64,000 nt of DNA from Trichoplax adhaerens. Lineage: Eukaryota; Animalia; Placozoa. Under the pieces are notes generated by a model. The model was not told the DNA's origin and made no database searches. It saw nothing but the letters and a program-made list of their open reading frames with translations. The stretch covers positions 22,482-86,481 of the forward strand of contig NW_002060952.1 in assembly GCF_000150275.1 (NCBI RefSeq), given 5' to 3'. The position numbers and the translations under genes are program-made. Shown here piece after piece: positions 521 through 64,000 of the stretch (its first letter is position 1; the number at the start of each line of letters is the position of its first letter).

Positions 521-3435
521 TTACTCGCAGATTTTACCAAGGAGCCAATACGTTTTCATAATTCCAAGCCCCTAATGATGTAAAGAACGTTTTCCTTACA
601 GTAATATAAGATTTTAGGTAGCTATGCAAAAGAAAACTGTTGCAAGTAAGATGTCTTAAAGACATTTAATCCAACTTTAAGATACCTTAATATTCGTCTG
701 TCCTCTATATTGCAATGTATACGAGCCACTTCTAGCAAGATTTCGGAAAGTAACCTGACTGCAATGAATTTTTGATGCTGAAAGGTTGCGACGGAAATTT
801 AATATTAATATCAAAATGCAATTATTACCTGTCATAATGTAATTATTGATTATTTACTTATTAGCTTAATAATAATTCGCAATATCTCGTTAAATTTAGT
901 TTTATGTTTTTGCTTGTAAATATTAATATGCGGGCTTGAAATTAGTGCCGTAAGCTGAACTTGAAATCGAAAATATTATAGATGGCTTCCAATTATAGTA
1001 GAGCCAGTATTCGCGTTAAATCAATCCGATTAACTGGATTGTTAAAATCGAATTTAGCTAGATTGCAATAAGATTCAGGCCCCAATCAGTATCTGTAATA
1101 AACTATCGGCAAGAAGAACTCTTGATTTACTTGATTTATCTGCTTATAAACTCTTTCATGCCTTGAGCATATAAATTGAAATAGTATAATCCCGCCGTAT
1201 AAAAATGAGTATACGGTATCTATACGAAGGCATTACTTTTGAGGATGATATTCTATGACCGGTGAAACTAAATAGTAGCCTGACAGAAGGGTTAACTCTA
1301 AATCATTCTTACACTACAGGCAAACCTACAATGTAGTTAATTTCTAGTGAAAAATTATTGGATTGCTATAGAAATTTAAAGGCTATTTATTAAGTATGAC
1401 ATTTATCTAATTAACCCATTTATCACTAATTTGTTATCTAGATGTCCGGTTTAGTTAATAGTATCACTAAAAAGGTGCTAATAAAGCAGAATCGTCGACT
1501 GTACCTAGGCTACTTGATTCCATTCTTGATGCAGTATTAATAGTATCGCCAAACAAACAATATCTTGGCATTTTAATACCAACAATTCCGGCAGCACATG
1601 GGCCTACAACGCACATACGATATGTATATTATATAGGTTATATATATAATATATATGTGTAAAACAATACATAATGATCGTAAACCTATAGGTTAAATCT
1701 ATCACGGAATTAGCTGTACCATGGCTTATAGTGTACGCTCTAGACGTTATCGCATCAAAAATATTAACGCCAAATCAATATCCTAACCTGTATGAATCCC
1801 AGCACGTAATTGCAACGGAAGACTCGAATTATGTGGTATCTTTAAATTCCGGACTGTATCGAATAAATCCAATGCCATGTTTGCAATTTCGATAGCATGC
1901 TGATTTCTTGGCAATCTTACTGGTAAACCAGATGCAACCATGTAATCATCACCAATGGTTTCTACTTTGTAGACGTTGTAATTCTCAATTCGAGTATCAA
2001 ACTGAATATATAATTCATTTAGCATATCTACAATTTGCATAGCTGTACTCTCTTTGCAAATTTCAGCAAATCCGACAATGTCACCAAAGTATAATGTCGC
2101 ACTATCAAATGCTTCAGCTGTTACACATTTTCCCTCTTTAAGCTGTTTCACAACTGATCTTGGCAACATTTGACAGAGTAATGTATCCGTCTTTCTCCTT
2201 TCACGAATTAATACATGAGTTTTAGTAGCAACATTAATAGCATATAGCTGATATTTTCTTGTTAATTTTATAGTTCGAAACAGCACCAGAGGACAGACAA
2301 TAACTGTACTAACCAATAAAGCAAGAGAAATTAAGAAAGCTACATTAGCACAGTGGCTAATATAATTTGACTGAGTTACAATATAATTAGCAAGTTCTTT
2401 TTGAATTAAATACAAATGGTTGATGTGAATAGTAATATTTTTGAACCAATAATTGGCATCTGCCATAGATGGTTTGTGAAGAGCATTGCTAGATATTATT
2501 CCTCTAAAATGCTGTACTTGCATATAGACACTGCCATTAACGCCCTGAATATACGAATCGTAACGATTTCTAACTAATTGTGAATATCGACCTGCAGATT
2601 CAATATTACTTATGCCAAGTTGTAAGTTTGAATAATATAACATTATTTCTTCATGATTCAATTTCTTATTCGCATAGTAAACGCTACCTAGAGATCTCTC
2701 CATGCCAGCTTGCTCTATACCATTTATTAGCATCCGAAATGCAACTAAATGATTCCATAGCTGATTTTTTTTAATTTTTTGTAACTTATCAATAGTCCAA
2801 GCAAATATCTCAGCAATTATATCAGAGTAAAACTCAAGTTCATGTAAAACAGTGGTATTCAAGCGATTGGCTACTTGACTGTGATGGTGCGATAAATAGT
2901 CTTCCAACGCAGTACCATTTCTTAAATAATAAACGGGTACATGATCAGTTAGCCATAGCTGAATATGCTTTATTGCTCGAATAGTTTGACGTCTTTGCTG
3001 AAGAAGGGGTTCAAAGATTTGATCGCTAAAGTTACTGCTTACCAACAGGACTGTTTGACTTCGTTCGATTTGTAAGGAATAAATTAAATTTCCAAGTCTT
3101 ACGCTTAATGATAGTTCGTTCTTAATTTGGATACCGTCATCATTCCTGACCTTATCAGAAATTAAATTATTAGTGGCTATAGCGGCTAAAGCAACGCAAG
3201 GAATTAATAATAAGAGGAAAAATTTTAAAATTTGATTCCGGCTACCAGTAGTCTTAGTTAGATCGTCATTGAGACACAATGTTCGTTTACCAAATTTATA
3301 GTATGAGAGTGTAGTATTCGACGCGCTGTTTGACATGTCCTCGACATTTCTGCTCTTAGTGAGGTCGGAATATTCACTAAACGTATAAGATTTACTAACT
3401 GTATGTTTGAAACGATCTCTTCCTGAAATAGCCAT
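521..3435 (-). CDS. NIT-domain two-TM receptor guanylyl cyclase (NIT-GC), paralogue 1
   Basis: Spliced by eye: complement(join(521..571,686..777,1505..1603,1788..3435)), all GT-AG. TM1 [19 protein letters not shown] motifs [10 protein letters not shown] and [14 protein letters not shown]2 [20 protein letters not shown]. Signalling helix [17 protein letters not shown]. Cyclase motifs [43 protein letters not shown]; ends [17 protein letters not shown] in KVET and C in RYCLFG are the GTP-specifying residues. Confidence 0.92.
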
Positions 3436-6400
3436 GATTTTCCTAAACTTTTTATGTTAAGAAGGTTAGAATTTTAGTTTACGGTAGAGTCTTGTTTATT
3501 GAAACACTTTTAGTACCAATTACGATATACAGTCTTTAGGTATATGAAAACAGAGAAAAGTATTTGCTAGGATCAATTGTATTTATTCTCTAAATTTTTC
3601 TTGTTTAGGCCATTCTTTTCCCTCATATCCTTTTCTATTTTTACCTTTAGAGCTATGATAATCAGTTTTGTTTAGCAATTAAAAATTAATAAAATAATTT
3701 ATACTGGTTACCTGCTGCAGACGATAATGAAGTATCGTACCGAGAATTCCCACCTATCCATCTATCTATAATTCATGCCGTTGCCTGTAGTACTATATTA
3801 ATATACTCTAATCTATGGAGTATATCTACCCAAATATAAGCAATAACTTAAAGTATTTAAAGTGTTAATGATCGTAGTTATCTTAAAAGGGTAATGAATA
3901 ACATTAAATCGCCCCAAAAAAATGAAAATACACTCACGTAAATTTTTTTACCACATTAACAATTAATAATGGCGAAAGATCAAGGCGCCATTTAATAAAA
4001 TTTTGAAAAGAAATAATTTTTATGTTACTATTACTGTGCTAACACGATAAGAATAGATTAAAAAATAAAGCAATATATATCACATCAATAATCAACTCAG
4101 TAATTATGATATCAGTCATATGAAGTAGACTGGACCTGGAATTTGTTGGAAATTGAAAGGCAGCAGTTCAAAGGAAAGTCGAATAATACATCAGAATATC
4201 AAAATACAGAAATTCTAACTTTCAATATTATAAATTATTTATAATAGCCAAGTTGCTTAGCCAACAATTATCATAGGTGTTCATTATTTTTGGAAATAAA
4301 AATAGTTGTGCATCAATTCTATTTCCTTAATAAATGAGGCTGAGGTTATATTCTCATTATTTTTTAAATAAAATCAAGCCTGTAAAAATAATTAACTACA
4401 GACTAATGTCATACTTGCTGTCCTCCCTATTTACCAACAGTATGTCACAAAAAGAGTACTGGTGACCTTTCATCATCAAGAATCCGAAACAAGCACATGT
4501 CTCTACACAGGAAAAAATACAAAATTCAATTTTCGTTGACATTTTAACTATTCTATACCTTAGCAAATATTCAATTAACTTTGCAGATTATAGAAAGATA
4601 ACATTATTTATGCACATCTTTAAAAAGTATAGATAAAAAGTATTAAAAGTAAATACAAGTTAGTAATTTAATAAAAAAAATTATAGTTATACCTATAGTC
4701 ACTCGTGCACCATTCTATTAATACTACAATAGCTTTTCAATAATTGACTAATTCAGTAATTATTAATTGGTATAGGCTATTCATCAGTGCTCCATGCAAT
4801 CCTATTGATAAATTTATTAATAATAGCTCTCTAGTCCTTGTTCGACCACTTTCATTGACTGCAATGATTATTTCTAATAAGCAGCAGTCTTCTTCACTAT
4901 ACTCGGTTAAATGCCTCAAAACTACTTGTGTAGAAGCTTTAATTGGTAGCTATACTCATTTAACGATCTTTTTGAATCCACCGACTCCACAGAAATGATG
5001 CTATTGAAATCTCTAATCCTCATCATTCAGATAAATAAATCAAGTAGAAGGTTTTAACGAAAATATAAAATAAATCAAAGCTTATTTGGCTGAGATATCG
5101 TATCGATTAACTTAATAATAATTTTACAAAACCATTGGTAAGAGAGAGAAGTAACTTCTATTATAGAACTACGTTAGATAAGCTACTGATAATATCTCAG
5201 ATCATTTTAGATGCAAATGAAATAGCAAGTGTATTACAAAACTAATCGCTATTCTTCATAATAACCACATCGATAATATCACATATATCATTCAAAATGT
5301 TTGTGTGTCTCAGATATCACTTGAATATTTATTTTTATATCTATTAGCCCACACTTTCCTATTTAATATTATCGATTAAAATTATACGTTAGTTTTACGA
5401 CCATACTCATTCAGTAATGTGTGCGTGTCACGTTCTGTAATAGTTACATAATTAGTATGTTACCTTCTTTCTATATATGGTTAAATATCACGATGTTATT
5501 ATCACGTCATGCGTATATAGATGTAGTTATGGTACTATATTAAGCTTATCTATATATGTATTCTCATGTTGCCATACTCGGTATGATATCCTATTTGTAA
5601 TGACTAAACTAGGGAAACCTTTCTGTTGGTGATGATCTTGTGATCTACGTCAGTAGATCAAAGGTCACAATAAAGAAAGTATATAAACTCTTCGTTTTAA
5701 CAATAAAGTTAGTTCTTCAACTTAATTACTGGGTCTCCTTGCTGAGTGCAGATCTAGTACTTGTTACAAAATTTGGAAGTTGTAACAGTGCGATAACAAA
5801 TAAAATGTAAATTATATTTAAAGTTAATATTACAACTTATGTAGGAATAAAATACAGCTGCATGATTACTTTGAATACTTTTAAAATATGTACTCTATAG
5901 CTTTGCTGAATGATCTAAATACAGTAAAATTCATATATGCCTCCAGGTCTGATTCGGAAACTTTAAAAACTGGCTAATATTTCAATTGCCTAAGTGGATT
6001 GAAATACTAGCGTTTGCTATAGGGTGATCGTCTACACTACCATTTCTGGAGGATGTTAGAAAAGCCATTTAATTCTATCGACATATAGTATTGTGGTTTT
6101 CCATATTACTTAGTTATAATTTAGCTATAAAAATCATATATAAGGCCATAAGCATTAAATACAAATTTCTAGATATTAATACTTAAATAATTCTATCAAT
6201 ATCTCTGTATTCTGGTATTCATATTGTGACTAGATAAAAACATTTAACTACGATTAATTTTACAAGCAATAAATAAATTTTACTACTTCAATGAATTATA
6301 AAATAAAACATTCATCTTTACAAAAGCTCAAGATAATTAAATGTTTGGATCATAAACTATGCATAAGAAAATTTCAATATACATATCTTAATACCTAACG

Positions 6401-7071
6401 ATTATGTTAATACTTTTGGGCCCAGGATCGTAGGATAAATTTGAGTTTACCTATGTGTCTTAGAATTAATTAAGTTCCCGTCATGTCTGCAATTCTTTGA
6501 TATCAGTCCTTTATTTTACTCTTTAAAGTAAATCACAAAGTTTGTATAACCTACTTAACTATTTAAAGTAATCAAGCAACTGTATTTCAGCATCGGTTAG
6601 CAGAATCATCAGAACAATCTATCATTATAATTAGAGCAAAAAATAATTTAAAAATGCAATGCGTAATCTTACGCAAAATCCGTCTTCAATATATTTGAAC
6701 TAGAGTTTAATTACATCACTTTCTACGCAGAGAAACAATTTTTGCTATTTTAGATGATTTTTAATAGAAATTTCAAACAATCAACATCTTAAATTTATCA
6801 AGGAGTTCCAAATTATTTTAACTCACTAAAATGAATTCTGCAAAACCAGGACAAGTACAATGTATGTGATTAAATTAGCTTAATGAACATATATCTTAAT
6901 TAAAATTTAATAATACTAAACGATGAGTAATTTATTAATGAACTTGTAAATAATTAATTAATCAATTAATAAAATAATTTCATTTATCAGTTTGCGGTTA
7001 TGAATAAATTGACTAGTTTTTCATACGAATACATCGATATTGTATGCATATGTCACGATGGCTTTTGCAGG

Positions 7072-7364
7072 GACTACTTAAAGAAAGAGAGGGGCTGTCA
7101 ACAATTTTTATTGAAAAAAAATGTAGAGGCTGACTATTCTTCTGGTCATTTCGCTATGTCACAAAGCTGGAACCACCATACACCGTTAGTGTGCAATCAA
7201 CTTAGTAATCACCTCGGAGCATAGCCGTAAACAGTACAGCATATGGTTTTAGATGTATATATGTTATATAGATCATTTAAAATGACCAGAGAAAGTCAGC
7301 CTCCACATTTTTGGACAACGAAAGTCGTTGATAGTCCGTCTCTCTTTCTTTTATTACTATAGTC
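7072..7364. mobile_element. Foldback/MITE-like element with ~80-bp imperfect terminal inverted repeats
   Basis: Left arm 7072-7151 (gactac...aagaaagagaggggctgtcaac...aaaatgtagaggctgactattcttctggtcattt) matches the reverse complement of right arm 7280-7364 (aaatgaccagagaaagtcagcctccacattttt...gttgatagtccgtctctctttc...tagtc). The ~130-bp spacer has no credible coding potential. Confidence 0.7.
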
Positions 7365-7764
7365 TATAGTCTCTGGCTATTACTACTTATAAAGCTTTAT
7401 CTATAAAAGAAATAACTTTAAAGGCTACTAAAAACCATAACTAATGTATTTTCCTGCTATTATAATTGATATAAAAGCGCCACTTTAAATATAGGCTATC
7501 ATAGCACATATTTTAATTAAACCTGTTTATACAATCAAAAAGAGACAGCTTAACAGAATTACCTAAGTATCATAAATCTAGCAATGTCATTCCACGAGTG
7601 TGTCAACAAATTAAACAAGAAAAGATTTCACGAATGCTACGAAAGACTACAAGTAAACAAAATAAGAGTAAAATTCTAAATTAAAGGCTTCAGTTTTACT
7701 AATTCCTTAATATAAATCATTAAATAGAGCATACTTGTATGTTGAACCAATTTCGTTTCTTAAT

Positions 7765-7804
7765 AAATTCTAAATTCTAAATTCTAAATTCTAAATTCTA
7801 AATT
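7765..7804. repeat. 7-bp tandem repeat (AAATTCT) x ~5
   Basis: aaattctaaattctaaattctaaattctaaattctaaatt read directly from the sequence. Confidence 0.9.
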
Positions 7805-11747: not shown

Positions 11748-14700
11748 CTATATCGATATAGAATTTAAATTGACCATTTTACCGATTAACCAAAACGTCA
11801 TCATTGTTCCAAGGCCCTATCAAATTATAATGCAGAAATAAGAAAACGTGAAATTAACCTCCTCTAAATGAACTATGGAATTTCCTAGCATTAAAAAAAT
11901 GCGCTTGTTTGCTACAATACGAAGATCTCAATCAATAGCATAGTGTACAATTTCTATTACCTTAATATTTATATTTCCTCTAGGCTGTAACTCATAATGG
12001 CCGGTGGATGATAGAATATGGTAAGAGGCTTCGCTACAATGTATCTTGGAAGCTACGAAAGCAAATAAAGTAAACCATTACCAATTCTATGTCTGTTTCA
12101 AATTTATGCAAAAAGCTGTATTATGAATTCACATTTTTCTTACATTATTGGTAAAAATGTGAACTAGTAATAAATCTCAATTAATCATTTGGATCCATCA
12201 CAAGGAAAACAAGAAAATATATTTATACGAGAAACTATAATGATAATTATGTAATCAAATATTTCAGCTTTACTCTCGTCTTATACTGTTACTTTTATAT
12301 TTACAACGAATATTGTTGCCAGCGTAATGTGAGTATAAACTCAATTATGAACTTAGATTGAAGAACGAAAAGTTACAGCCACCTTATTGTTTCAGTAGAT
12401 AGTAAAGCATAGTAAAATGAAAAAAGTTTTTCTGCGCTGTATAACGTACATTGCATTTGATAGAGGCTTTCTATAATATTTGCTTTCAATTCGTCTATAC
12501 TTTAATTACATTGTGAGAAAAATACTAATAATCGCGATTGAGGAGACCAACAGACCAATTATACTAGTGTTTTATTTGAAAGTCTTTTATTTATTAAAGA
12601 ACCATAGAGAAAGATACTAATAATCGCGATTGGGAGACCAACAGAAAAATTATATTAGTGTTTTATTTGTAAGTCTTTTACCGATAAAAGCGCATTTTAG
12701 TTTATATTATTTCTGAATTCTTGCCCTACTTACGAATATCTAACTTCGATAAACTAAAATAGCATAGTTAAACAGCTATTACAATAGATTTCGTTGGCAC
12801 ATTATAATCAGTAGATTTTTAAATATTAATATCCATTATCTTAATATTGCTACTCTACTAGATTTAGAATGTAAGGCATAAGCAACTTTACAACAACGGC
12901 AAAAAAATGCGTAATAATCTCACCTTCTCCGCTAGATTCCATCCTGGAGGCAGTATTCACAGTATCGCCAAATAAACAATATCTGGGCATTTTCCTACCC
13001 ACTACGCCAGCAACACAAGACCCTATAAAATTTCAATAAATTCAAGTCAATTTTATTTAAATTACCTAGTTAAAGTTATACAAATAATGATATTAAACAG
13101 TTTTGGCCAAGTTTTTCAGAACCTGAATGAATTCCAGCGCGAAGTTGTAATACAAGATCAGGATTATGTGGAACTTTTAAATTTTTAATGATTGCTAACA
13201 ACGCTAGTGCCATATTAGCAATTTCAATAGCATGCTGATTTTTAGGTAATTTTTTAGGTAAGCCTGACACAACCATGTATGCATCACCGATTGTTTCTAC
13301 TTTATAGACATGATAATGTTCAATTTCACTATCAAATTGGACATATAAATAATTTAACATTTCAACCACTTCCATAGCAGTGCTTTCATGGCAAATTTGA
13401 GTAAATCCAACAATATCACTAAAATATAGCGTTACATCATCGTATGTTTCAGCCAATACATTTTTTCCATGTTTCAACTGTTCAGCAACTGATCTTGGTA
13501 GCATCTGACATAATAGACTATCCGTCTTTTTTCGTTCCCTATTTAATTTTCTAGTTTTATCCGCTAAATTGCTAGCATATAATTGAATACTACTTGTTAA
13601 TGTCGTTGTTAGATACAGTAGCAGCGGACATACAATGACTACACTGATTAATAAAGCCAGGGAAATTATAAAATTATTGGTAGCAGCTTGGCTAATTTTA
13701 CTCGATTCATTCAAGATAAATTGTGTTGTTTTTTCTTGTAGTATTGATAAACGATAAATATAATTAGTCATATTCTCAAACCAAACGTTGGCACTCATGA
13801 CAGAAGGTGAATGATTAACGTTAGCTGATACTTTTCGACGCAATATAGTCAGCATAGCGAGAATACCGGGAATAGCAGGATCTTCGTCATATTTTCCTTT
13901 TACAAAATCTGAATACTGTTTAGCCGATATTATATGCGTTTGGCCTAGTTTTAATTTAGAATAATATTGCAATAATTCAATATGAGTTAAATGGGTTTGA
14001 GAAAAAAAGACAGCACCCAATGCTCTTTCCACACCAGTCTCTTCTGCTCCGCTTAATAACATCTGATAAGCTACTAAATGATTCCATAAAGTCTCACTTT
14101 TAGTATAACGTAAACCATCAGTAATCACGGATAAAAGATTGGCAACAATATCGGAATAGAAGGTTAATTCTTGGAAAACAGTTGTATTCGCTGTATCAAC
14201 AATACTGTCGCGATGATGTGTAAGATAGTTTAGAAGTATCGTCCCATTTTTTAAGTAACCAACTGATGTATTGCTCGAAGGCCATGGTTTGATATCATTA
14301 ATAGCGTCATCGGTTTCTATTCTCTTTTTAATTACTGATTTAAATGCGAAGTTATTAAATTTACTGCTTACGAAAATAACGGTCTTACCACGTTCAACCT
14401 GTAAAGTTTGAATTAATTTAGCCAATCTGATCCCAATTGCAGCATTCTCTTTAACTTGATTGGCTTGATTATATCTTGAAATATCCTTGACTAACGCTGA
14501 TATAGTTACTGCAGCTAATGCTATGCATGGAATTAAAATTAAAGTCACCATTTTTAATGATTGGATACGTCTACCAAATAATTTTGTTGGATCATCGTTC
14601 ATACACTGCCTTCGACTATTCACTTTGGTTATAGCCAACGATAAGTCGTTTAAACTCTCTTCTCCTTCACTGTTACCGAAAATATCGGAATACTTGTTCG

Positions 14701-14755
14701 CTGGATTAGAAAGAGTAAAATGGCGAGTCGGAAGTTGATCGGTTTCTAGGTCCAT
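11748..14755 (-). CDS. NIT-domain two-TM receptor guanylyl cyclase (NIT-GC), paralogue 2
   Basis: complement(join(11748..11816,11961..12052,12924..13022,13123..14755)). First ATG is MDLETDQ at 14755; the ORF-track start at 14860 is a TTG. Motifs [77 protein letters not shown]; ends [16 protein letters not shown]. Confidence 0.92.
12522..12680. repeat. Local tandem duplication (~68-bp core, ~92-bp period) in intron 2 of NIT-GC2
   Basis: atactaataatcgcgattg(a)ggagaccaacaga..aattata.tagtgttttatttg.aagtctttta occurs at ~12522-12589 and ~12614-12680. Confidence 0.85.
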
Positions 14756-17469
14756 GACTTTCCTTTCAATTCGTTTTTTTTTTATTATAAATTTTAAAGA
14801 TTGGAACAATTTCAATTTTATCACCTTATGATACCAATAGATGATGATTGACTTTACCAAGAATCCTATTATTAAACCAAAAAATAATACAAGGAAATGA
14901 ATTTAACTTCCACTAAAACTAAGCATTATATTGGGTCTAAAATATTAAAAGAACATCATATGATATTTTCTTGTTGATCTTAACTGAAAAACTGGCTTAG
15001 CTAATTTAACAGCAATAGATAGGTAAAGTAAAATCGATCCAACGAAAGATATTGCAGATTTACTTCACCAAATGTCCTAATATGCACTCTTAAAATGATT
15101 ATCAGGATGACTACCAAGTCTTAATGATTTTGCATGGCATATTGAATCATATTTTGGAAACTAGTGTACATTTACAAACTAGGTATCAAAAACAAAATCT
15201 AAATCATATGATCATACAAGCGTAATATTGATAGAAAATTGATGATAATGATCTTTAAATTCAGTTTATCCCATTGTTTAAATCCTATGCAGAATAAGGT
15301 AACTTACTTTATTGTTTGAATTTCAGTATGACAATATTGTGTCAAGGCAAAAAAAGCTGAATGTTGTTTAAATTTAATGAAATTAGATCAGTAGAAGATG
15401 AATAAAAAATATTTTTTTAAAGTGCAAATTAATCGATCAGCTTATGTCAAAGACTGCCAACACATCGATCTTCATTAATATCTGATGTCATTATACAATT
15501 CGAAATTTGATGGCACTCCACTAGTGACTGATTGCGTCAGTGTTCGTTCATTTTAAAAACAGACAATAGTTTGGATTAATAATAACATTTTCTATTTCGA
15601 CATCGACTAAGTAATTGTGGGTGCATTTGTTAGCTCCCGCCCCTTCTTCCACTTTTCCCTCGAATAAAAATGGGGTTGTATCTTTATGTCATTCGGCATT
15701 ATAGTAATTATCCTATTGCTGTCAAATTTTAGCTATAAGAATAAAACTCTTTGATTGGTACATACTGGGCGTAATACGAGTATGATAATATACATATCAA
15801 TAACATTATACGCTATAGCATACTGCAACTATCAGAAATGAATCAAATTAATATCTCATAGTTGTATCTTCTTAATCAGATCTTTAGTCCCCACAACTAT
15901 TGACCACACTGATAAATAATAACTTCATTGCATTTTTTTAACCATAATGGCTGAATGGTTCTAATTTTAAGTACATTCAATTAGCTACAGAAATAGGTTC
16001 CTATTAGCTCACATAGACACGAAATGAAATAAAGATTGGATGGCATCAATAATTACTATTTATAACAGACTATTAAGTGCCTTGAAATCATATTTCATGT
16101 CATATTAGTAAATTTTAGGTTAATGTTGTTCACGCAAAGTTAAGAAATAATACATCTTTATCTAAGGTTATTATCAATTTTCAAGAACAATTTTACAAGC
16201 TTAGGTTTGAAATCCATGTATATTTTGTGATTTATACCTGATGCTCGCTTTTAGTTGTATTAACTTTTACTATCCTTCAAAATCTATTAAATTTCTAACG
16301 TACAGTAATGTTAGGGATATAAATGTGACCGATGATGTAGTTTCAGCTTTGCAAATCTCTCTTTCTCCATTTATGATACAGAAATCATATTGTAATAGGA
16401 ACTTCCTAACACTTATTGGATACTTACTATAGGAAATTTATTTCAGCTTAGCTCGGATCAATTATGGTTGTTGTCGTAAATTTCAGCTGACCATCAACAC
16501 TAAGTAAGTTTGTAACAAAATTATACCATTATCTTATTATCAAACTTAATAGCAGCATGTCTGTGCAAAAAAAAATCCTACCTGTAATCTCTAATAACCA
16601 AAATTTAGAAAAGCTTGATTTCCTACAAATTTGTCTTCTACATGTATTTACGGTAGATTTACAAGCTGACTAATAAATTTAGATCAGCGACCAATCTTTA
16701 AAAATAATTTAAAACAAAAAAAATTATTTATTAATTCTAATCTAGTCTATTGTTATCAGTTATCAATAGACAGCAATGAATGCACATGAATAATATAATT
16801 ATTTTCACCTGCTTAGCTAAATTTATATTAAAATTTATTCTGTCGTCATCAATAGCTTTTTTGGTATATCTAGCATATAATGATTTTAACATTTCATAAG
16901 TATCCTGTTGAGCTCGATCTATTTTAACTTAATTTTATTAAAATTAAAATCATTGCTCTGCTATCGTAAGTTTAAGAAATTCTATCAAAAAGTAACCATT
17001 GCATTTATAATTAACTTTCGATATTTAGACCGTAATCAGCTAATCTTTCGCTATGTATAAATATCAGCAACAGAAATACCGATTTGGTAACATATTCAGT
17101 GAGAAATGTGTTTCCATCATTGTTATCAAATAATTTTTGTCGTGAAGTTGGCAATCTAAATACCGCAGCTTGTATATTAACTTACTAAAAGAACAATAAA
17201 TTAAGTTCACAATCAAATTCTATGTCCACCAGTTATCTTAAAATGTATTTGTGAAAATTAATTAATTAGCTTTAAATGCTATAAATGTTACTTTATTAAA
17301 AATATAATAAACCAGCATCCTATTTTAATCATAACGATCCTTGTATATTGGTTACGTATTTTTGCCAGTTTCAATAAATTAAAACAATTCTTGCGTATTA
17401 TTTGATTTGATTATTTACTGGAAACTGATATGGTAAAGAATCGTATAGATAATATTAAGCAATACATGT

Positions 17470-26417: not shown

Positions 26418-28868
26418 TTAGATGTTGAAAGAGTTCAAAGTGATCATTTTGCCAATTATCCAATAAGTTCTCATATTTCCTATTCCCTATATGTATTCAA
26501 GATAGTAAAATATCACTGTTAGCCAATTAAAATTGATAATAAAAATTTGTCCTATTACAATGATGAATTGAATCCTCGATTATGAACAGTGCCCACACTA
26601 TTCATATCTGTTAAAACTACAATCGTACAAAATCCACCTTTTCTAATACTTTCTCATGATACAACGGTTTTAGCGATATTTGCTTAAATATTATACCTTG
26701 ATATTCACTTCTCCTCTTTCTATCAGTCGATATTGATAAGTTTGCACCAATTTTCGATAGGTCGCTTCGCTGCAATGTATTTTTGATGCTAATATATAAC
26801 CGAGTTGATAGGATATTAATACAAATAATAATGCTAGCAACTTTTGAAAATGATTTAATTGTCCCAGCTCATCGATTTTGAGCTTTAATGATTGATATAG
26901 AATTTAATTGCATTCATCTTTATGCCTGATTATATATATTAGTTATATTATATCTAATTTTGACTAATCAAGCATAATTCCAAGTCTTATGATACCTTCT
27001 CCGCTTGATTCCATTCTTGATGCTATATTTACAGCATCACCAAATAAACAATATCGAGGCATTTTTCTACCGATTACTCCAGCTGCACAAGATCCTGTAA
27101 ATTCATGGATAAACGAAAATTACGTTCAGTTCCGCAGTTTCATAGAGGCGATACTAATTAATTTTAGGATTTTATGCTAGAAAAAGTTTGAAACTAGTTT
27201 AATAAGCTCTATACCAGAATGGATCCCAGCTCGTAACTGAATTTGAGTATTTGGGTTTTGAGGCAGTTTTACTTTTTTGATCGAGTTTAACATATCTAAT
27301 GCCATTTCGGTAATTTCCACAGCATGACGATCATCCGGTAATTTTTTCGGCAAGCCTGACACTACCATATAAGCATCACCAATAGTTTCAACTTTATAGA
27401 CTTCATGTTTATCAGTTTGGACATCAAACAACAAGTAGATATTATTCAACATGTCAACTATATCCATAGCTGAACACTGATGGCAAATTTGCTCAAAGCC
27501 AACAATATCGCTGAAATAGATTGTAACGTTATCGTATTTTTCAGCTACTATATCTTGACCTCGTTTTAATCGTTCAGCAATCGATTTTGGTAACATTTCA
27601 CATAAGAGTGCGTCTGTTTTAATCTTTTCGCGTTTCAATTTTTTAGTTTTGGTGGCTAAATTGACTGCATAAGTTTGAATGCTTTTCGTTAATTTAACGG
27701 TTAGGAAGATCAAGACTGGACAAATAAATAAAACACTCATTAGTAGAATGAGTGAAAGTATAAAATTTTGGGCTGCAACTTCGCTAATTTTTGTTGATTG
27801 AGATTGGATATATAGGGCCGTTCTATCTTGAATGATTTTCAGTTGATTAATATAGGCAGACATGTATGCAAACCAATCGTTAGCCTGTTCAATGGATGGC
27901 TTATGAGGGATATTTTCGGTTATAATACTGCGTAACGACTGCAAACGTTGATTGATACTCGCATTAGAGACCGTTTCATTAAAATGAAGAGCAATATAAT
28001 TGGAATACTGAACAGCTGAAGTTAAGCTCATATTACCAAGTTGTAATTTAGCGTAATAAAGTAACGCCTCCCGATAGCTTAAGTTCGTTCGTAAGAAATA
28101 GATACTACCAACAGCTCTTTCAAAGCCGGTCTCTTCTTTGCCCTTTAATAGCATTTGATAAGCAACTAATACATTCCACAAACTGTCTGTCTGCACATTG
28201 CGGATACCAGTGGAAATCCAACCCAATAAATGACTATTAATATTAGAATAAAAAATTAATTCATTCATAGCGGTAGTATTGGCAATATCGACCACTTTGT
28301 CACGATGATAATTTAAATATTCATAGATGGCACTACGATTGGCTAAATAAGATGCTTTTTCGTTTAAACTATGCAATTCTACTGTTGGCCATGGTTGAAT
28401 CTTGTCTATTGCTCTGTTTGTTTCTAATCTTTCTTGAATCAATGACTTAAACATATTTCTATCATAATTACTACTAACATATAAGACAGTTTGACCCCGT
28501 TCAATCTGTAAACGGTGAATAAGATCACCCAATTGAATGCTCGAAGAAATCTCCTTCTTAACTTGATTAGCCTGATTCTGCTGAAATGTGTTGTTGACCA
28601 AGCTGGAAACTGTTATAGCAGCCAAGCCAATACAAGGAATTAAAATTAATACTGTCATCTTAATTGATTGGATCCGTTTTTGAAGAGCACGAAGTGAACG
28701 CCTATCTATATAATTGCCTAATCGTCTGATACCCTCGGTTTCTTGACTATCACTACTATTATCATCGTCTTCGTCTCCATGAAAATCTTTGTACAAACTG
28801 GAAGCAATATGGCTTTTCAGCCGCATTTGAGTATTCAATCGTAATCTTCCGTCACCTGAATTCACCAT
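26418..28868 (-). CDS. NIT-domain two-TM receptor guanylyl cyclase (NIT-GC), paralogue 3
   Basis: complement(join(26418..26486,26697..26788,26996..27094,27215..28868)). Motifs [81 protein letters not shown]; ends [16 protein letters not shown]. Confidence 0.93.
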
Positions 28869-31800
28869 TATGAAAATGGATGCCCTCGGATGATAGATAA
28901 TTTTGGCATATACAATATCCTATTAAATTCGTAACATACAGTTAAATTAATGTTGCTGCTTACTCGAATAAAATGAGTATATTAACACGTTGTATTTTTA
29001 GTAATGTTAAAAGGCTAAGTTGATAATATCCTAACTAGTGGAAGTAATGAAGTATTCACATCTCTCTAAGTTGAAGATAAGGCTACTAGTATCAATCGCA
29101 ACTCTGGTTACTTCTTAAAATGGATAGCACATAATCAAAAATCGATCTTATTAGAAAGATAAATGAATGTCATTAGTTGAATATCTCTGAAAGCGATATT
29201 AATGGTCTATTTAAAAATGGAACAGAGATAAAGCAGATTAAAAAATGCAATTGGTAGTGGTCGTTCTAAGAATATTCAATCTTAAATGTTGTAAACCACT
29301 GAGATACTTCTCATCAATGCATTACATAAATCCTTCAGAGCAGTTTAAACTCAAGTCAATTTTCTGTTATATGATAGAATCAATTTCGCTTCAATCATTT
29401 CTGTCATGTCGATAGAAAATAACGATTAGCTCATTTATTAGAGTTATTAAACTAGTATTAGGCTCCCATTTCTGCTTAAACTGAAATAGGATACACGCTA
29501 TGGCGCAATTTCTTAACCATTTCAAGGTAAATTAAAGACGGTACTTAAACGATAACCACGCTACTAGATAATTCTTAATAAATAATTATTATTTAGATTC
29601 TAAAGAAGTAAACTAATATTCCTTCCGTCCTTCGAGGGGGTGGGGGTATTTGTGTGATATGTACGACATTATTACTTGCCAGTTAATTCATATACTTAGC
29701 ATTAGAAAGCAATAAATAACATGTCCAAACTGATTTATGAGTGTATTCTTTCACTTATAGATGGACCAATTCTAATTCAACTTCAAGCTAATAGTTTTAG
29801 AGATTGTTACGAACGATTCAAGAATTTAATAATAATGTAGCATAAAATACTTAATTGAAAATTTAGACTCTTGATCGTGATATTCTTTCTAGTCAAACAC
29901 TTGAAATTATTATCAATGATATCCTGAGAAATATCATGTAACTGATTTAAGAAAAATATCAATAAGGGCTTGTCTTTCTGATTCTCCAGAAGTAATTCCC
30001 AGCGTAAATGAAGATATAAACAAGAGCACCTTATGTACATATAGAACATAAATCGGCTCAAAAAATACTGTATTAGAAACTATTAATTTGGTACCGACAA
30101 TATTGCGTGTTCATTACATGGAAAGTTGTTAATGATACTAGTGTAAATAAATTCCATTATACACTAAGGGATAGTTGTACATGTTGTTGATATCAACATA
30201 GAGATATATATTTACTGTGTCATCTTCATTCCCTCAAGAATTCTAATATTGATCACGCCGAACTTTAGAAAATCTTACTTAAAATAAATCATTTCTATGA
30301 ACAATTTGGACTTAATACAAATATCTGGACAAGGTAATACAGTCTCATTTGCTATTGATTTTTACATACTAATACACTGCAACATTATAACAAGAAATTG
30401 ATGTAGACTGCATTTTTCATTTAAAATTTGTTTTTAACTAATAAATTAAAGAAATTTTAAATTCAAGACTATAAGGCAATATAAAATTTTCATCCATATC
30501 ATAGGCACAGTATTCGAACTGAAAGTATTACTCTATATGTGTAATATAATACATAAAAATTAAATTTAGACATATCGTCAATATATAAACAACTTCAATA
30601 AATTGATTGATTCAATTTTAGGCTAGTAAATTTATTAAAACCAAAAATTTTGAACGTACTTTTTCCTCGCTGAGTAAAATTTTACCGCAACAAAATCGTT
30701 CTGGCAGGAATATTAATCGTCTGTGATTCCTGTAAGCTAAAACAACAAAAAATAAGGATTTAGAATTATTTTTTTAGGTAAGTCCTGTCAATGCTAAATA
30801 GATCGAATGACTGCGTGTTATAATGTTATTAATGTGGCATTCAATAAGTTTATAATCGTGAAAAGTATTTTGGTCAGTAAATTCGAATAATTTCACCCAG
30901 GTATCAGATCCAAATTTCATATCGTTTCAAAAAATGAAGTTGCTTACTTGGATAAATAGCAGGAGTAACGAATACGAGTATTGGACGCTAATTTGCTTTG
31001 TGTAGTAATGAAAAAAAACGAAAGACCAAACGGCTTATACGACAAAGTAAAAGGACTTCTTAGTCAACTGTCGCCACTTTTCACTACATACCGCGACCCG
31101 TCTTATTGTAGGGCACCAAAGTAAGTCCTGATATGGCTATTACTTTTAATAATTGTTGTGAAAAGAAACAATAATACATTAGAAATTTGATCTCTCGGAA
31201 GAATACAATAGCCAAAATTATCTGCATGAACTAATGGTTGGAAATGCTTCCTTCGCATTTTTCCATTGTACTAATTAGCAATCTAATTTTTTTCTATTTA
31301 TAGCTTTGGTTGATATTATAAATTCTGACTCCTGCAGTTAAATAATTGTCTGTATAGCTATAAAATCAAACAAATGATTTATTTTTGCTTAATCCTTATA
31401 GAAAATATAACGAAAATAGCGCTGATAAGATAGAAAATTACCTTTATTATAATATACTACTTAACATCTTTAACTTCCTTTAATTAATTTTAAAACTTAG
31501 AAAGAATTATTTTAAATTGGTCTATTGCATTTCAGTATTCAAAGCAGAATGTTAATAAAATTTTAATAGAAGATATCATACGGAAATATTTGATAGTATT
31601 TGACTGAGCAGTAGCAATTTCCGATTATCTTAATCATAATATCCAAACTTTTTAGAAAGATGCAATTCTCTCCATATAATAAACTAAAATTCTTGAAAAA
31701 TCAAAGTATACGTAATTCATTTTACAGCAATATTATTTCTTAACTTTCGATAAAGGTAAATAGTAAATTTCCAATAATTTTAATTATTTCTATAGAATAA

Positions 31801-34800: not shown

Positions 34801-36863
34801 AGAACAGCACCATTTTTTTTATCATAGTTTATAGCCTCCGTAATTCTAATCTATACATAAATGATGCATGCATTAATTATTAGGGCGATTTATTGTTTTC
34901 ATTATAATATAATTGTTGTTTGACTTTTTCTTTATCCAATTATAAGTTGTTGTTATTTTTATTTATTTATTTATCTTAAAAATAGCAGCAGCTTTGATTC
35001 GACTTCTCAAGAAGCTTCAGTGATTCAACTATATAATTGCCGCTAAAATTCCTATCTAATTACTTTCATGCAGGTAATTGACGAGTAACACTGATCTTAT
35101 CCAATCTACATTTTACCTTATCATATTGCTTCTTGTTGTAACGGTATATTTTTTATTTGTGATCTCCTACCATAGCAATAATATCTACCTTTTCAAATTA
35201 CCGTTTATCCATGGTTAATTGAGTGAAACTAAAAGTTCTATGGGTGAACTATAACAGCATAAATTTTTCAGTATAAAAATTTATAAAATTTTTATGCAAA
35301 TTATCTATTAATTTATAGATAAAATCAAAATCTATTTCCATAATTTGTAATCAGTAAATGCCAGACGCTTATTTCAAAAGACTCCTTACATCTATCATTC
35401 ATAAATATTTTACTGTATTAAAATTTATTTCTAGTATTTCAAAGTTAACATAAAATCTATATATATTGGCAATATAGCAGCACACTTCACACTTTTTACA
35501 TATTATACGGTTTCATTATACAGATACATAGAAATTCAACCAAATAAACAGATAACTCAGATAAGTTTGGTTAATCTTACTGAATACAAATACATTGGCT
35601 TAATGAAATTGCAGCTCTAAACTTTTTTAAATCTCATTTGAGACTTGAAATGAAGTAGCAAGCGATCACTACCAGACTTAATATATATATGAAGTAGAGA
35701 AACACAACCTTGTTCATGAAAGTATCACAATTGTCTCATCTGGAAGTTTAAGCACATTCGCGGTACCGTATGTATTTTAACTCACTCCGCAAGTAATGCG
35801 GTATCGTTTACTGCATTAGCTTACAATATCTACAGGACACGGACATAAATAAATCTTATCTAGTCACGAAATCATAGTGATAATGAATTATGCGAAATGT
35901 AGGTATTAATCCACTGTATATTAGAGGCTTTTGCATGGTCGTTATAGTATATGCCGTAACATACAATGAGACTCCAATAAACTATCAAAAATGGTGTTAA
36001 CTACGTTATATAAATTATCTACCATCAGACTTACGAATGATGACTATGTACCGTAAATCATTTCAATTCTACGTTCTTAGTCAGTCATAATTTGTACAAA
36101 GATAATAATTTCAGGTGTGATAGATATTACAAACGAGAACAGTGATTGCGATATCTTAAAATAGGGGTCTAATTACAGTGTTAGTGATAGTGTTACTACA
36201 ACATATTTTACTGTACAATATATATATGTTACAGTCATTTAAGACGTTCTTTGGAATGACCATAACACATCCGCTTTTTAAGCTATCCGTAAAACGAAAG
36301 AAAGATGAAATAATGAAAAAGGCAATATCTGTAGACTGATAACAGCCACCCATGCATAAGATGAAGATACCGCAAGTTACTACTGATACCAGCTATTATA
36401 ATTTCGCTCTATACTGATAAGAGGATTGAGCCTTTAGTAACGAGTTAAATATTTAATATTGTTATTACAGTGTGCAGTGCACTATAATCATTTAATGAAA
36501 TGGTTAGTAGTCAACTCAGTTGGTATCTACGCCTTTGCCTAAGTAAAAAGTATAGGAATGGGCGTTCGAGTAACTATGAAAAAGTTTATACAGCCATACA
36601 AATTATACGAATGATATCTGTACAGCATAAAATCTTTGTATTGCAGACTACCGGCATGTTAATTCTTCTAAAGTTACTTAATTGATAGCAATAAAAATTA
36701 ATATAATCAAGAATTCAGTTTGTTAACACATTTAGAACATAAATTGAAGAGATAATAGAAATTCAAACTTAAATTGGTAGCTACTTTCGGAACATCAGCA
36801 TCCAGTCGCGTTGTAATTTAGCTTTATGCCCGATAGAAACACGTATTAGCAACATTTTATTCA

Positions 36864-41749
<4,886 letters not shown>

Positions 41750-44682
41750 TTTATTTTCCTTAATCTAGAAATCAGTAAAAAAAAAAGACTTGATGGTTAG
41801 TCGAGCTTTACTAACTCTAGCAGTCTTCAAAGCTAGCAGTTACTAATAAAATCAATTTTTTAGCCGTTAAAGAAGTTGCAATATTGCATTAATAACTTTA
41901 TATGATAATTAATACTTTAATGGAGATTGAAATTGAAATGAATTTTATTTTTCTGTTTTAGGCTAAAAATTGTAGTACCGAAAATATTAGATGACATTGA
42001 TCACGAAATTATTGAAAGATCTTAAAAGCTAATAATTGGTGAAATTTTTTCCGCTTTATCGGACAAGATACTGAAATAAATTGAAGAATAAGTAATGTAT
42101 GTATTAAAATATATCAGTATGGTCACATAGATAATATAGTGTAAATTTAACTGATAATTACGGTAAAAATAAGTTAAAATATCAACAATAGCCTACCTCT
42201 CTTTTCATGAAACACGGATGACGTGATCTTTTCAATTTTTGCTCATAAAACAAACAATTTCAATATTGATGGATATCGTCCCTTGATTGATAAAACGCCA
42301 TAATCCTCGATTTATGAAATATTTTATAGTCACTTGTCATTGATTGATTATTATCCCATTTTAGACATTCGATTTTTTACAACGCCTAACAAAATAGTAC
42401 TTATGTATATAGGTAAGCAAATTAACTTAGAAATTTTCTTGTTTCAGAGAAATCAAGCGACGATACCAATATAAAAAAATACATTAGTTTTCCTATAAAA
42501 AAATCGATAGAATCAACGATTTAAGATACTCACTAAATAATGTGATGGTCAGTGATATTGAACTATTACTATATCGTGTTGTATACGTTAGTCTTAAATT
42601 TCAATGTATTGTAAATAGCATATTGATGAATTCCTTTGACTGGTTTCAATTTAATATTATAGGAATACAATATCATGGAAACTAATTAATTAGAGTACAA
42701 TAAGTTGGTCTTGGGCATACTGATGCTTATTTAGACGATAATATTCTTTGTTAGTTGATATCAATAACTATGTACATATAAACATTTCTTTGTTGCTACC
42801 CTACTAAATATACCTACTATGAAATATTTTCTTCTGTCTGTGACTGATATCTGATATTACAACTTTGGATAAATGCTAATCTACTTGTAACGAAGGTGTT
42901 TGAAGTGAATCTGGTAACAATGTCACCACTGTCCTTGATGACGCTAAACTTAAATATTTTATATGAATATGTCTCCATTTTATTCTAAAGAAACGAATTA
43001 ATAGCATTAAATTTAACGATTGAAAGATTCTTTCTTCTCATACTGATAATCGAATTGCGATAACGTTTTATTTTGGAAAGATTTTATCATTTGCAGATAG
43101 TTTACTATTTGCTTCATATGATCATATATACTTACAGTATGATTGGCAAAATACGCCATTTATAAGCTTTCTTCGTATCGGTCCATTGCGCCAGATGTGA
43201 GTTGAAACTAATAGGAATAAAAATGGGCACACTACTTAGAGCTATGTTGCTATTATTTACGTATAATTTCGTATATCGTTGGTATGATGATTTTGATCAC
43301 TATTAAACGCGCATACCTAATTATACGCGTATATTTGTATATTATCATCAAGGGTATTGAAATTCAAATGATCTGTAACTATTTAAGTATAAAAGACAAC
43401 TTGATATAGTACTACTTCAATATAGCCGAACTAACACTGGGAAATGTTTTTTACGCCATACCAACTTTTTACAATAAATCATATCTTCCATTTTTTAATA
43501 ATTGAAATGTCCATATCATAACTACTAGAACGGAGGTTAAGCTTAATTGATAGAAATTTAAAATGTTTTTCATTTAACATATTTATTTACTTTACTCTTC
43601 AATTTCTAATAATAAATTTATGTCATACAGGCCTACGCAGATGATGTGCCATGATCATACTACGTATAATCATGGATTCTCTTTGTGTCAATACTGTATA
43701 GCTATGAATTTATTTTACAACTTATAACAACCAACAAATTCTAAATTTTAAAATACAAAGGTGAAAGGAAAATTTCAGTATTACTTCCTTTTTGATTGTA
43801 TAATTCAACTATCAGCGTGGATTACAGTACGCGTCTATTCTATTCTGCATGAATAGCAGGTGCATCGATTGTGGTCTGACAATAAAGACGTTTGCCATAT
43901 TTGTTATCCTCTTTTATCCAGAAAATAATCTCAATTTTACGTGCAATGAACACCAAATCATGAAGCTTATCAAACGTTCTCTCGTCAGTTGGATCATACG
44001 CTACGCGTATCTTTGATCTAATCTGCGGTGTTTAACTATTGGCAGGTCTAATGCATAACTGTGCTGATTTCCTATCAGTCAAACTCGAGATACTTTCCAC
44101 CGCAATGAGCATAATAAGATACGTGTCCGTTGCACTTTATTCGAGTTCTCTGCAATTGTAAAACAGATGACGTAATTTATTCAATTTTAAATTTTCTGCC
44201 ACCTCCATCTGACCGATATGCCACTAGACAGCAATCTGTGACCAACAGTGACTGATAATTATAATTAATTGATGAATTAGTACTAATGTCAGTTTCTGGC
44301 CAAGCACGATAACTCAAGTCGACTTTGTTATGAAGGACTGTGATACTGCCAGACATTGAATACAAGTCTCACCATACTGTAGACGTGTATTAACTGAGAT
44401 GGCATGTATACACGTAAATTAAGGTACAACGAAAACATCATTCGATTTGAATAGTAACTCTTCTGTCCGTACTAATAATAATTATTAATGTTGTGAAGCA
44501 TAGATTTGTCTAGGCCGCTGGTTTTGCATCAAGTGCGAGAGTCGAAGATGAACTACTGCAGAAGAAGGTGTCTTCCTTCAATACCATTATTACAGTACTA
44601 TACATTGTATACGTATACACTGTACACTGTAGCCTATGCCATGTTATGGTCACAAGCTGTACAGTACAGTACAGTACTGTAC

Positions 44683-63704: not shown

Positions 63705-64000
63705 GTAAGCCTTATTAAAATTATAAATAGACAGTTGGCCATATACATAATTTTATTACTTTATAGCTAGAACAATCTATACAACACTATCGAATAGAAC
63801 TAGGGAAGGAATTCATTAGAGTTAATCTTGCTAAATGACTAATAAAGTGGCCATTGGATAGCAAACTATAAGTTACTGCTACGCAATTATACTTTGCAGA
63901 AATTAACTAAATCATTCTGGATAGCTAATCTTGATGGTTTCCGTACAGTAATAATCAATTTATATGAGCTACATTATTTGGAATAGTTTAGTTGTAATAG

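Follow-up and report, generated by a model that had tools for sequence, protein, structure and literature searches.

Does the 64-kb window of Trichoplax adhaerens analysed here (the whole stretch of DNA) encode an array of intact NIT-domain guanylyl cyclases (NIT-GCs), and what would such receptors sense? Four intact NIT-GC genes, A to D, lie head-to-tail on the minus strand, each marked by a large open frame (1783-3435, 13076-14860, 27177-28868 and 40148-41749). In each of them the cyclase domain is completed by three short downstream exons, located by tblastn, Pfam and splice sites. Every gene has four coding exons at identical intron positions, with exon 2 of 99 nt and exon 3 of 92 nt, and all introns are GT-AG with phases 1/1/0. 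The models of 629 (A), 630 (B), 637 (C) and 598 (D) aa contain no internal stop. Model C equals database protein P0001 (TRIADDRAFT_29434) exactly, the start of P0001 lying 14 aa later, and model D is an exact match to P0121. The features are as follows; NIT-domain coordinates are PF08376 match positions on contig C1405 (genome G000) minus an offset of 22481.

521..571, minus: gene A exon 4 with TAA stop at 521-523 (tblastn, splice sites, model)
686..777, minus: gene A exon 3, 92 nt (tblastn to homologue C-termini, splice sites)
1505..1603, minus: gene A exon 2, 99 nt, cyclase motif [19 protein letters not shown] (Pfam, AG/GT boundaries)
1788..3435, minus: gene A (NIT domain GCY 8, EDV22184) coding exon 1 (Pfam, hydropathy, GT donor after split Gly codon)
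2281-2337, minus: gene A TM2, aa 367-385 (hydropathy)
2386..3090, minus: gene A NIT domain (PF08376, G000:C1405:24867-25571)
3175-3231, minus: gene A TM1, aa 69-87 (hydropathy)
11748..11816, minus: gene B exon 4 with TAG stop (tblastn, splice sites, model)
11961..12052, minus: gene B exon 3, 92 nt (tblastn, splice sites, Pfam)
12924..13022, minus: gene B exon 2, 99 nt (Pfam Guanylate_cyc E 2e-13, splice sites)
13123..14755, minus: gene B (NIT domain GCY 11, EDV22185) coding exon 1, ATG 14755 (Pfam, first Met, hydropathy)
13616-13672, minus: gene B TM2 (hydropathy)
13730..14419, minus: gene B NIT domain (PF08376, C1405:36211-36900)
14492-14548, minus: gene B TM1 (hydropathy)
26418..26486, minus: gene C exon 4 with TAA stop (P0001 mapping, splice sites)
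26697..26788, minus: gene C exon 3, 92 nt (P0001 mapping, splice sites)
26996..27094, minus: gene C exon 2, 99 nt (P0001 mapping, splice sites)
27215..28868, minus: gene C (NIT domain GCY 10, EDV22186, TRIADDRAFT_29434) coding exon 1 (Pfam, P0001 mapping, hydropathy)
27708-27764, minus: gene C TM2 (hydropathy)
27819..28526, minus: gene C NIT domain (PF08376, C1405:50300-51007; Foldseek to NasR 4AKK)
28596-28652, minus: gene C TM1 (hydropathy)
36864..36917, minus: gene D exon 4 coding part with TAA stop (splice sites, model, RNA contigs)
37091..37182, minus: gene D exon 3, 92 nt (RNA joints)
38036..38134, minus: gene D exon 2, 99 nt (RNA joints, Pfam)
40198..41764, minus: gene D (NIT domain GCY 4, EDV22187) first coding exon (Pfam, P0121, RNA contig joints)
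40691-40747, minus: gene D TM2 (hydropathy)
40790..41494, minus: gene D NIT domain (PF08376, C1405:63271-63975)
41588-41644, minus: gene D TM1 (hydropathy)
41979..42070, minus: gene D 5'UTR exon U1, 92 nt, in-frame stop at 42011 (RNA joints, frame check)
42197..42300, minus: gene D 5'UTR exon U2, contains ATG 42208, upstream limit beyond 42300 (RNA joints)

Exon 1 of gene A runs from the N-tail through TM1, the NIT ectodomain, TM2 and the signalling helix into the cyclase, of which it holds the first ~110 positions; exon 2 matches Guanylate_cyc positions 110-140 (Pfam, E 2e-11). When full-length and C-terminal queries were run by tblastn on the window, including the spacers of 8-12 kb, neither a fifth copy nor pseudogene fragments came up. 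Two ORFs in the spacers (4744-4998 and 29807-30061) had no match in Pfam, the ORFs at 44-52 kb belonged to no Pfam family, and scanning the window for tRNAs, Rfam families and tandem repeats returned nothing relevant.

Transcription was followed for gene D, to which alone reads were mapped, in three runs from two studies (X7 and X11, both recorded as RNA, and X8, presumed RNA). The RNA contigs show that gene D is transcribed and spliced exactly as modelled. Joints 38134/40198 and 37182/38036 were seen in all three runs, and the 5'UTR joints 41764/41979 in X7 and X8 and 42070/42197 in X7 and X11; the contigs run past the coding part of exon 4 as 3'UTR. Exon 40198..41764 opens with 15 nt of 5'UTR followed by the ATG at 41749, where P0121 also begins. 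A coding start at 42208 was rejected, since the contigs insert the 92-nt exon 41979-42070 between 42208 and the coding exon, which puts ATG 42208 out of frame and introduces the in-frame stop at 42011. The initial annotation had given the array an extent of 521-42208. Its lower limit stands, 521 being in the stop codon of gene A; the upper limit falls in a 5'UTR exon and gives way to the gene D start at 41749.

All four proteins run in the order N-tail, TM1, NIT ectodomain, TM2, signalling helix of ~50 residues and class III cyclase. The Pfam NIT profile (PF08376, gathering cut-off 24.9 bits) scores 75.5 bits in A, 84.2 in B, 114.8 in C and 93.7 in D, with E-values from 1e-20 to 1e-32 (3e-26 in gene D). 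Exactly two hydrophobic segments were found per protein, one on either side of NIT (Kyte-Doolittle peaks > 2.5; 4/4), and within exon 1 there are 5-8 N-glycosylation sequons in the ectodomain versus 0-1 in the cytoplasmic part. By prediction from hydropathy and sequons, the NIT domain is outward-facing in A-D. The initial annotation had described four intact head-to-tail paralogues of TM1-NIT-TM2-signalling helix-cyclase type and had proposed profile searches and TM prediction on them; profile scores above the cut-off, two TMs per protein and the intact models agree with that description. It had also noted the lack of kinase-homology and H-NOX domains. Indeed, Pfam finds no kinase-homology, H-NOX or ANF-receptor domain in A-D, and TM2 is only ~54 residues away from the cyclase. 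A match to HNOBA is limited to profile positions ~172-216 (the last ~40), which correspond to the helix preceding the cyclase. GC-A/NPR1 and GC-C have the cyclase domain and this preceding helix in common with the array proteins, and the catalytic and GTP-specifying motifs are identical. In contrast to these receptors, A-D have two TMs versus one and neither an ANF-receptor ectodomain nor a kinase-homology domain, which sets them apart from natriuretic-peptide-type receptor cyclases; the two TMs and the missing H-NOX domain set them apart from soluble H-NOX-type guanylyl cyclases.

Exon 1 of each gene matches the first ~110 positions of Guanylate_cyc (Pfam; 109 bits in gene A). Exons 1 and 2 of A, B and D together cover cyclase profile positions 2-141, exons 3-4 aligning to homologues, and gene C (P0001) spans positions 2-182 of the 183 of PF00211 (226 bits). 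All proteins (4/4) carry the motifs (S/G)DIVGF, (V/I)ETIGD, RYCLFGD and N(T/I)ASRMES. Each chain combines both metal Asp, the transition-state Asn and Arg, and the guanylyl-type pair of Glu (in VETIGD) and Cys (in RYCLFGD), as the earlier claim of GTP-specific E/C residues had it. We take these residue roles to be those established for class III cyclases; the roles of Glu and Cys reportedly derive from E925/C995 of RetGC-1, in work by Tucker et al. in 1998. Judged by residues, the cyclase domains are of guanylyl type with a homodimer-competent set and are candidate cGMP makers. They match GC-A (E 7e-72) and GC-C best, with adenylyl cyclases ranking lower, and the gene D domain aligns motif by motif to GC-A. 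Gene A shows two oddities: its second metal Asp is followed by another Asp (GDDYM), and its first is preceded by Gly in place of Ser.

The NIT identity, which had been made dependent on finding a match, is borne out by profile and by structure. In addition to the Pfam scores, an animal NIT profile matches Klebsiella oxytoca NasR (PDB 4AKK) over the full domain (E 2.2e-13). The AF2 model of the gene C ectodomain and TMs (pLDDT 95.3) yields 4AKK chains A and B as its only significant Foldseek matches in the PDB (E 1e-6, TM 0.68/0.61), and for this gene C model the double four-helix-bundle fold of NasR was found. Helices 2-64 and 258-325 of the model span TMs and bundle without a break. Together with the two TMs that flank NIT, this agrees with the bacterial-style two-TM sensor topology claimed for the array, and the continuity of bundle and TM helices suggests piston or rotation signalling. 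The same TM1-sensor-TM2-signalling helix topology is known from bacterial two-TM proteins whose periplasmic domain is a four-helix bundle, such as NarX/NarQ, NIT chemoreceptors and histidine kinases; unlike these bacterial sensors, the array has a eukaryotic class III guanylyl cyclase output, spliceosomal introns and a place in an animal-wide clade. NasR and the array NIT domains (~18 % identity) both carry LQxERG and GxERALG motifs with the pocket arginines, whereas NasR, a one-component regulator, is soluble and has an ANTAR RNA-binding output, and the array NIT is extracellular, between two TMs, with cyclase output.

A, B and C all read E-R-E-R-R at the five positions that align with the pocket proposed for NasR. 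Gene D reads E-I-E-R-Q and its Hoilungia sp. H4 orthologue E-V-E-R-Q. The pocket is assigned by alignment to NasR only, and that of NasR was itself deduced from mutants rather than from a ligand-bound structure. All pocket-aligned residues are kept in A-C and GCY 9; in four other paralogues, where the alignment is less certain, they are apparently not all kept.

The genes themselves are not new: Moroz et al. (Sci Rep 10:13020, 2020; PMC7400543) catalogue all four individually in their supplement, as NIT domain GCY 8, 11, 10 and 4. The N-termini of A-D equal these published sequences, gene A being GCY 8 (EDV22184, TriadITZ_007944) and gene B beginning [10 protein letters not shown]. The initial annotation had already called the family known; the array is a real observation on known genes. 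For placozoan GCY 1-12, the same genes with the same TM-NIT-TM-cyclase architecture, PMC7400543 proposes nitrite/nitrate sensing, and its main text is silent on the tandem layout. According to the same paper, placozoan NIT domains possess the residues critical in bacteria, which we find for A-C and GCY 9 but not for D. A literature search by gene identifiers found no paper. The sole functional evidence for the family comes from Platynereis dumerilii NIT-GC1, which gives cGMP after the NO donor SNAP only with its NIT domain (Jokura et al., bioRxiv 10.1101/2023.08.02.551600; eLife 2023), in an annelid assay that cannot separate NO from nitrite/nitrate. Platynereis NIT-GC1 and NIT-GC2 share family and domain order with A-D; they are bilaterian, and bilaterian homologues are ~30-38 % identical to A-D. 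Unlike NIT-GC1, NIT-GC2 is a ciliary cyclase that seems to be tonic in phototransduction (bioRxiv 10.1101/2023.08.02.551600), so a NIT domain is no guarantee of NOx gating.

The array proteins match T. adhaerens and Trichoplax sp. H2 proteins at 100 %, orthologues of array genes occur in three other placozoan species, and the numbering of the genes in the literature implies that the order of the four is unchanged in Trichoplax sp. H2 and Hoilungia hongkongensis. As a whole, the locus is best explained, with a probability of about 0.8, as a conserved tandem array of four intact, catalogued NIT-GCs that would act as ligand-gated, cGMP-making homodimers. As in bacterial sensors of the NarX or chemoreceptor type, a small ligand in the extracellular NIT pocket would move TM2 together with the signalling helix, and this shift would switch on intracellular cGMP synthesis. 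For A-C the most likely candidate ligands are nitrite/nitrate or another NO-derived species, given the five kept pocket-aligned residues and the micromolar nitrite in Trichoplax tissue (~150 uM, PMC7400543). In gene D, the response to these anions is probably changed or absent, because the first arginine is lost and the third arginine position has no basic residue. The locus presents no new kind of system. NIT-GCs are, however, a candidate second class of animal NO/NOx receptors beside the haem-based soluble cyclases, and the array offers a natural test set: three paralogues with NasR-like pockets and one without the key arginine, with the same output and as neighbours across placozoan genera. 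A comparison among A-D could tell if the response of an animal NIT-GC to nitrate, nitrite or NO donors depends on the pocket arginines.

How far gene D departs from its neighbours bears on two further readings, both of them tentative. It is possible, though we hold it improbable, that GCY 4, along with further placozoan members whose pockets are altered, has lost the sensing of NOx anions and responds to another ligand, or is tonic or intracellularly regulated. Ile94 of gene D (nt 41468-41470) replaces a near-invariant arginine, that of the NasR R50 position, which is kept in 87/90 animal NIT-GCs; R50A, like R176A, abolishes the nitrate response of NasR (PMC9581486), and the gene D position aligned to NasR R236 is not basic either. 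Moreover, gene D is 81-83 % identical to its Hoilungia-type orthologues versus 67-71 % for B and C, which together with its expression indicates that it is under constraint, and the apparently tonic behaviour of Platynereis NIT-GC2 would fit. Against this, gene D keeps the second Glu-Arg pair (NasR E175/R176), its fold assignment by Pfam is strong, one arginine might suffice for anion binding, and the pocket positions come from alignment to NasR. The related proposal, of similarly low likelihood, sees the array as an ancient mixed-ligand unit in fixed order, with GCY 8, 11 and 10 as NOx-anion receptors and GCY 4 serving a different signal or being a ligand-independent cyclase. In such a unit, GCY 4 would have been without the key arginine since before the Trichoplax-Hoilungia split and would have been retained beside the other three.

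Somewhat less probable still is the idea of the initial annotation that A-D are chemoreceptor-like sensors of external nitrate/nitrite, a repertoire in which every member has its own preferred anion or range of concentrations. Its premise of sensor domains more diverged than catalytic domains was correct: NIT domains are 21-45 % identical among A-D versus 54-67 % for the cyclase domains. The predicted outward-facing NIT domain, the differing pocket of gene D and the different sensitivities of NasR for nitrate and nitrite, to both of which it responds, would fit as well. Fast ectodomain divergence, however, is usual in receptor families and by itself no sign of tuning, and the one tested family member, in Platynereis, takes part in retrograde signalling by NO within the body. 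At 5/5 pocket-aligned positions A, B and C do not differ, so any tuning would need second-shell residues. Only D departs, and the sequence does not establish such tuning.

That the array is an artefact, made up of pseudogenes, of copies duplicated in the assembly or of contaminating bacterial DNA, is refuted almost with certainty by four intact frames in AT-rich animal DNA whose exon 1 identity of only 34-49 % speaks against assembly duplication, by the spliceosomal introns of A-D and the spliced gene D transcripts, and by the orthologues in other placozoans. A simple recent tandem duplication was rejected, too. The top matches all combine NIT and cyclase, and in the phylogeny the placozoan NIT-GC clade has a support of 99/99. 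Gene D falls outside a 100/100 clade that unites A-C with non-array paralogues, and B, C and D each have their own Hoilungia-type orthologues.

Four large open frames are carried by the minus strand of the AT-rich window (GC 26-38 % in a composition scan; G000:C1405:22482-86481 within the 105.6-Mb assembly). All four match the Pfam families NIT (75-115 bits, cut-off 24.9), HNOBA (last ~40 positions only) and Guanylate_cyc (first ~110 positions). The open frame of gene C matches the Trichoplax adhaerens protein TRIADDRAFT_29434 (P0001) with 100 % identity, and that of gene D likewise matches P0121 with 100 % identity, a protein common to T. adhaerens and Trichoplax sp. H2. Gene structures were derived from tblastn with homologues and inspection of the junctions.

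NIT-domain guanylyl cyclase (NIT-GC) genes of the array, with names from Moroz et al. 2020 (last exon including the stop codon)
Gene A: exons 3435-1788, 1603-1505, 777-686, 571-521; minus strand; 629 aa; NIT domain GCY 8, EDV22184, TriadITZ_007944
Gene B: exons 14755-13123, 13022-12924, 12052-11961, 11816-11748; minus strand; 630 aa; NIT domain GCY 11, EDV22185, TriadITZ_007945
Gene C: exons 28868-27215, 27094-26996, 26788-26697, 26486-26418; minus strand; 637 aa; NIT domain GCY 10, EDV22186, TriadITZ_007946
Gene D: exons 41749-40198, 38134-38036, 37182-37091, 36917-36864; minus strand; 598 aa; NIT domain GCY 4, EDV22187

The four genes have one common structure of four coding exons: a long exon 1 ending within the Gly codon of GIH(T/S)G, exon 2 of 99 nt, exon 3 of 92 nt and a short exon 4, separated by GT-AG introns of phases 1, 1 and 0. 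Since exon 1 ends at the same site in the other NIT-GC loci of the genome, this structure is family-wide. By script, all four models are in frame without internal stop, and P0001 and P0121 are contained exactly in models C and D, respectively. These two database proteins were used for full-length comparisons, separate exons for the Pfam searches.

For gene D, RNA contigs from two studies were aligned to positions 36700-42300 (sequencing runs X7 and X11, recorded as RNA, and X8, RNA by guess). The three coding introns are found exactly as modelled in contigs of all three runs, and the contigs reveal two more introns in the 5'UTR, 41765-41978 and 42071-42196. When the 92-nt UTR exon is taken into account, an in-frame stop at 42011 precedes the main ATG with no intervening Met; this puts the ATG at 42208 out of frame and places the start of gene D at 41749. 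The array delimited as 521-42208 in the initial annotation is real and was accurately described, except for the 5' end of gene D: its upper coordinate, 42208, falls within a UTR exon. Run X1, with introns of this region covered as well as exons, behaves as DNA. The RNA contigs extend ~430-1100 nt beyond the stop and ~590 nt upstream of 42300, reflecting either long UTRs or contigs entering neighbouring transcripts.

Each protein possesses exactly two strongly hydrophobic segments, which bracket the NIT domain, and the stretch between TM2 and the cyclase is only ~54 residues long. The ectodomain carries 5-8 N-glycosylation sequons and the cytoplasmic portion encoded by exon 1 has 0-1, a distribution that fits an extracellular or luminal sensor. 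As the cyclase needs cytoplasmic GTP, the NIT domain is expected to lie outside. Kinase-homology, ANF-receptor and H-NOX domains were not found by Pfam in the four genes. A profile built from 85 animal NIT ectodomains matched the NIT domain of the Klebsiella oxytoca regulator NasR (PDB 4AKK) along its entire length (E 2.2e-13). The gene C ectodomain, modelled together with both TMs by AlphaFold, reached a mean pLDDT of 95.3, and its bundle is continuous with TM1 through the first helix (2-64) and with TM2 through the last (258-325). Searched with Foldseek, this model gave significant matches to 4AKK chains A and B only (E 1e-6, TM 0.68/0.61). Pfam, the NasR profile match and Foldseek thus bear out the identity of the NIT domain, and the earlier description of two TMs around NIT followed by a cyclase, lacking kinase-homology and H-NOX domains, agrees with Pfam and hydropathy.

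The catalytic region of gene D is nearest to GC-A (E 7e-72), followed by GC-C (4e-60), and adenylyl and soluble guanylyl cyclases rank lower. Residues with established roles in class III cyclases are kept in all four genes: the two aspartates that bind metal, in (S/G)DIVGF and IGD, Glu in (V/I)ETIGD, Cys in RYCLFGD, and Asn and Arg in N(T/I)ASRMES. Every catalytic residue being present in a single chain, homodimers would suffice. Gene A alone carries GDDYM beside the second metal-binding Asp (window 1935-1950), where GDAYM is family-wide, and has YFGDIVGF in place of YFSDIVGF.

As noted in the initial annotation, the sensor domains are more diverged than the catalytic domains (pairwise identity 21-45 % in the ectodomain versus 54-67 % in the cyclase). 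An ectodomain diverging faster than the output domain is the usual receptor pattern. We compared the predicted anion pocket at five positions aligned to NasR E49, R50, E175, R176 and R236. E175 and R176 of NasR are predicted pocket residues (PMC7496416), and a NasR-based sensor loses its nitrate response upon R50A and R176A (PMC9581486). As translated here, the R49A and R176A primers in the Methods of that study alter the preceding Glu codon (CER to CAR, QER to QAR) and the R50A primer alone alters the Arg itself, which bears on these mutants as a pocket reference. Genes A, B and C read E-R-E-R-R, gene D reads E-I-E-R and then, according to the alignment used, Q or S, and the gene D orthologue of Hoilungia sp. 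H4 reads E-V-E-R-Q. The first pocket-aligned arginine is found in 87 of 90 animal sequences; gene D, the orthologue of gene D and a further Trichoplax paralogue lack it. Among nine T. adhaerens loci the full set occurs only in A, B, C and the gene on contig C1376 (GCY 9), with alignments of long-branch paralogues less certain. According to Moroz et al. 2020, placozoan NIT domains possess the critical bacterial residues (PMC7400543), a statement which these predicted pockets qualify. As for the proposed repertoire tuned to different anions, the residues of gene D, alone among the four, weakly hint at such tuning.

A NIT profile search reveals at least nine NIT-GC loci in the genome: four in the window, two on contig C1412 and three singles; Moroz et al. 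count 12 (PMC7400543). The C1412 loci form a second pair on the minus strand, 13 kb apart (L005, G000:C1412:8582552-8583250; L004, 8595550-8596239), both with very long branches and altered pocket residues. Judging from the published identifiers TriadITZ_010843/010844 (GCY 12/9), a third pair may be adjacent. A careful ML tree places A, B and C in a 100/100 clade that also holds paralogues from outside the array (GCY 9, the P0006/P0007 lineage), and gene D lies outside this clade, grouped with the C1412 pair and the locus on contig C1406 (92/93). A 99/99 clade joins most placozoan genes, apart from cnidarian and bilaterian ones. Hoilungia-type orthologues share 70-71 % (B), 67 % (C) and 81-83 % (D) identity. 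Tree and orthologues together indicate that the array is old and that its genes fall on both sides of the deepest split in the placozoan expansion. Orthologues of the array genes are numbered consecutively and in the same order in Trichoplax sp. H2 (TrispH2_001947 to 001950) and Hoilungia hongkongensis (braker1_g00824, 23, 22, 21); this gene numbering, rather than DNA, implies that the four-gene array is conserved in both.

NIT-GCs are named in a small set of papers. Trichoplax guanylyl cyclases with a NIT domain flanked by two TMs were described by Moroz et al. 2020, who proposed nitrite/nitrate sensing, reported the family in many invertebrate phyla and list all four window genes by sequence in their supplementary table (PMC7400543). 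In Platynereis, the cGMP rise of NIT-GC1 after the NO donor SNAP requires the NIT domain, and NO could not be distinguished from nitrite or nitrate (Jokura et al., bioRxiv 10.1101/2023.08.02.551600). Genes, architecture and the nitrate/nitrite/NO hypothesis all being published, the finding is already known. The word 'tandem' is absent from the main text of Moroz et al. 2020 (PMC7400543), and the window gene identifiers were not found in the text of the NIT-GC papers. What we add is modest: the tandem layout, made explicit and apparently conserved between placozoan genera, exact intron-exon structures, backed by RNA in the case of gene D, and the contrast of three NasR-like predicted pockets with one lacking the key arginine.

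Elsewhere in the window, positions 44000-52000 have a G+C content of 0.35-0.38 versus ~0.29 in the array, and short ORFs are numerous there on either strand; 13 of them were tested and matched no Pfam family. The plus strand, opposite to the cyclase array, carries two adjacent ABC transporter genes (52443-55779 and 59474-63770). Their ORFs match ABC_membrane (E 4e-34 and 1e-24) and then pieces of ABC_tran (Pfam), and they look like a second tandem pair.
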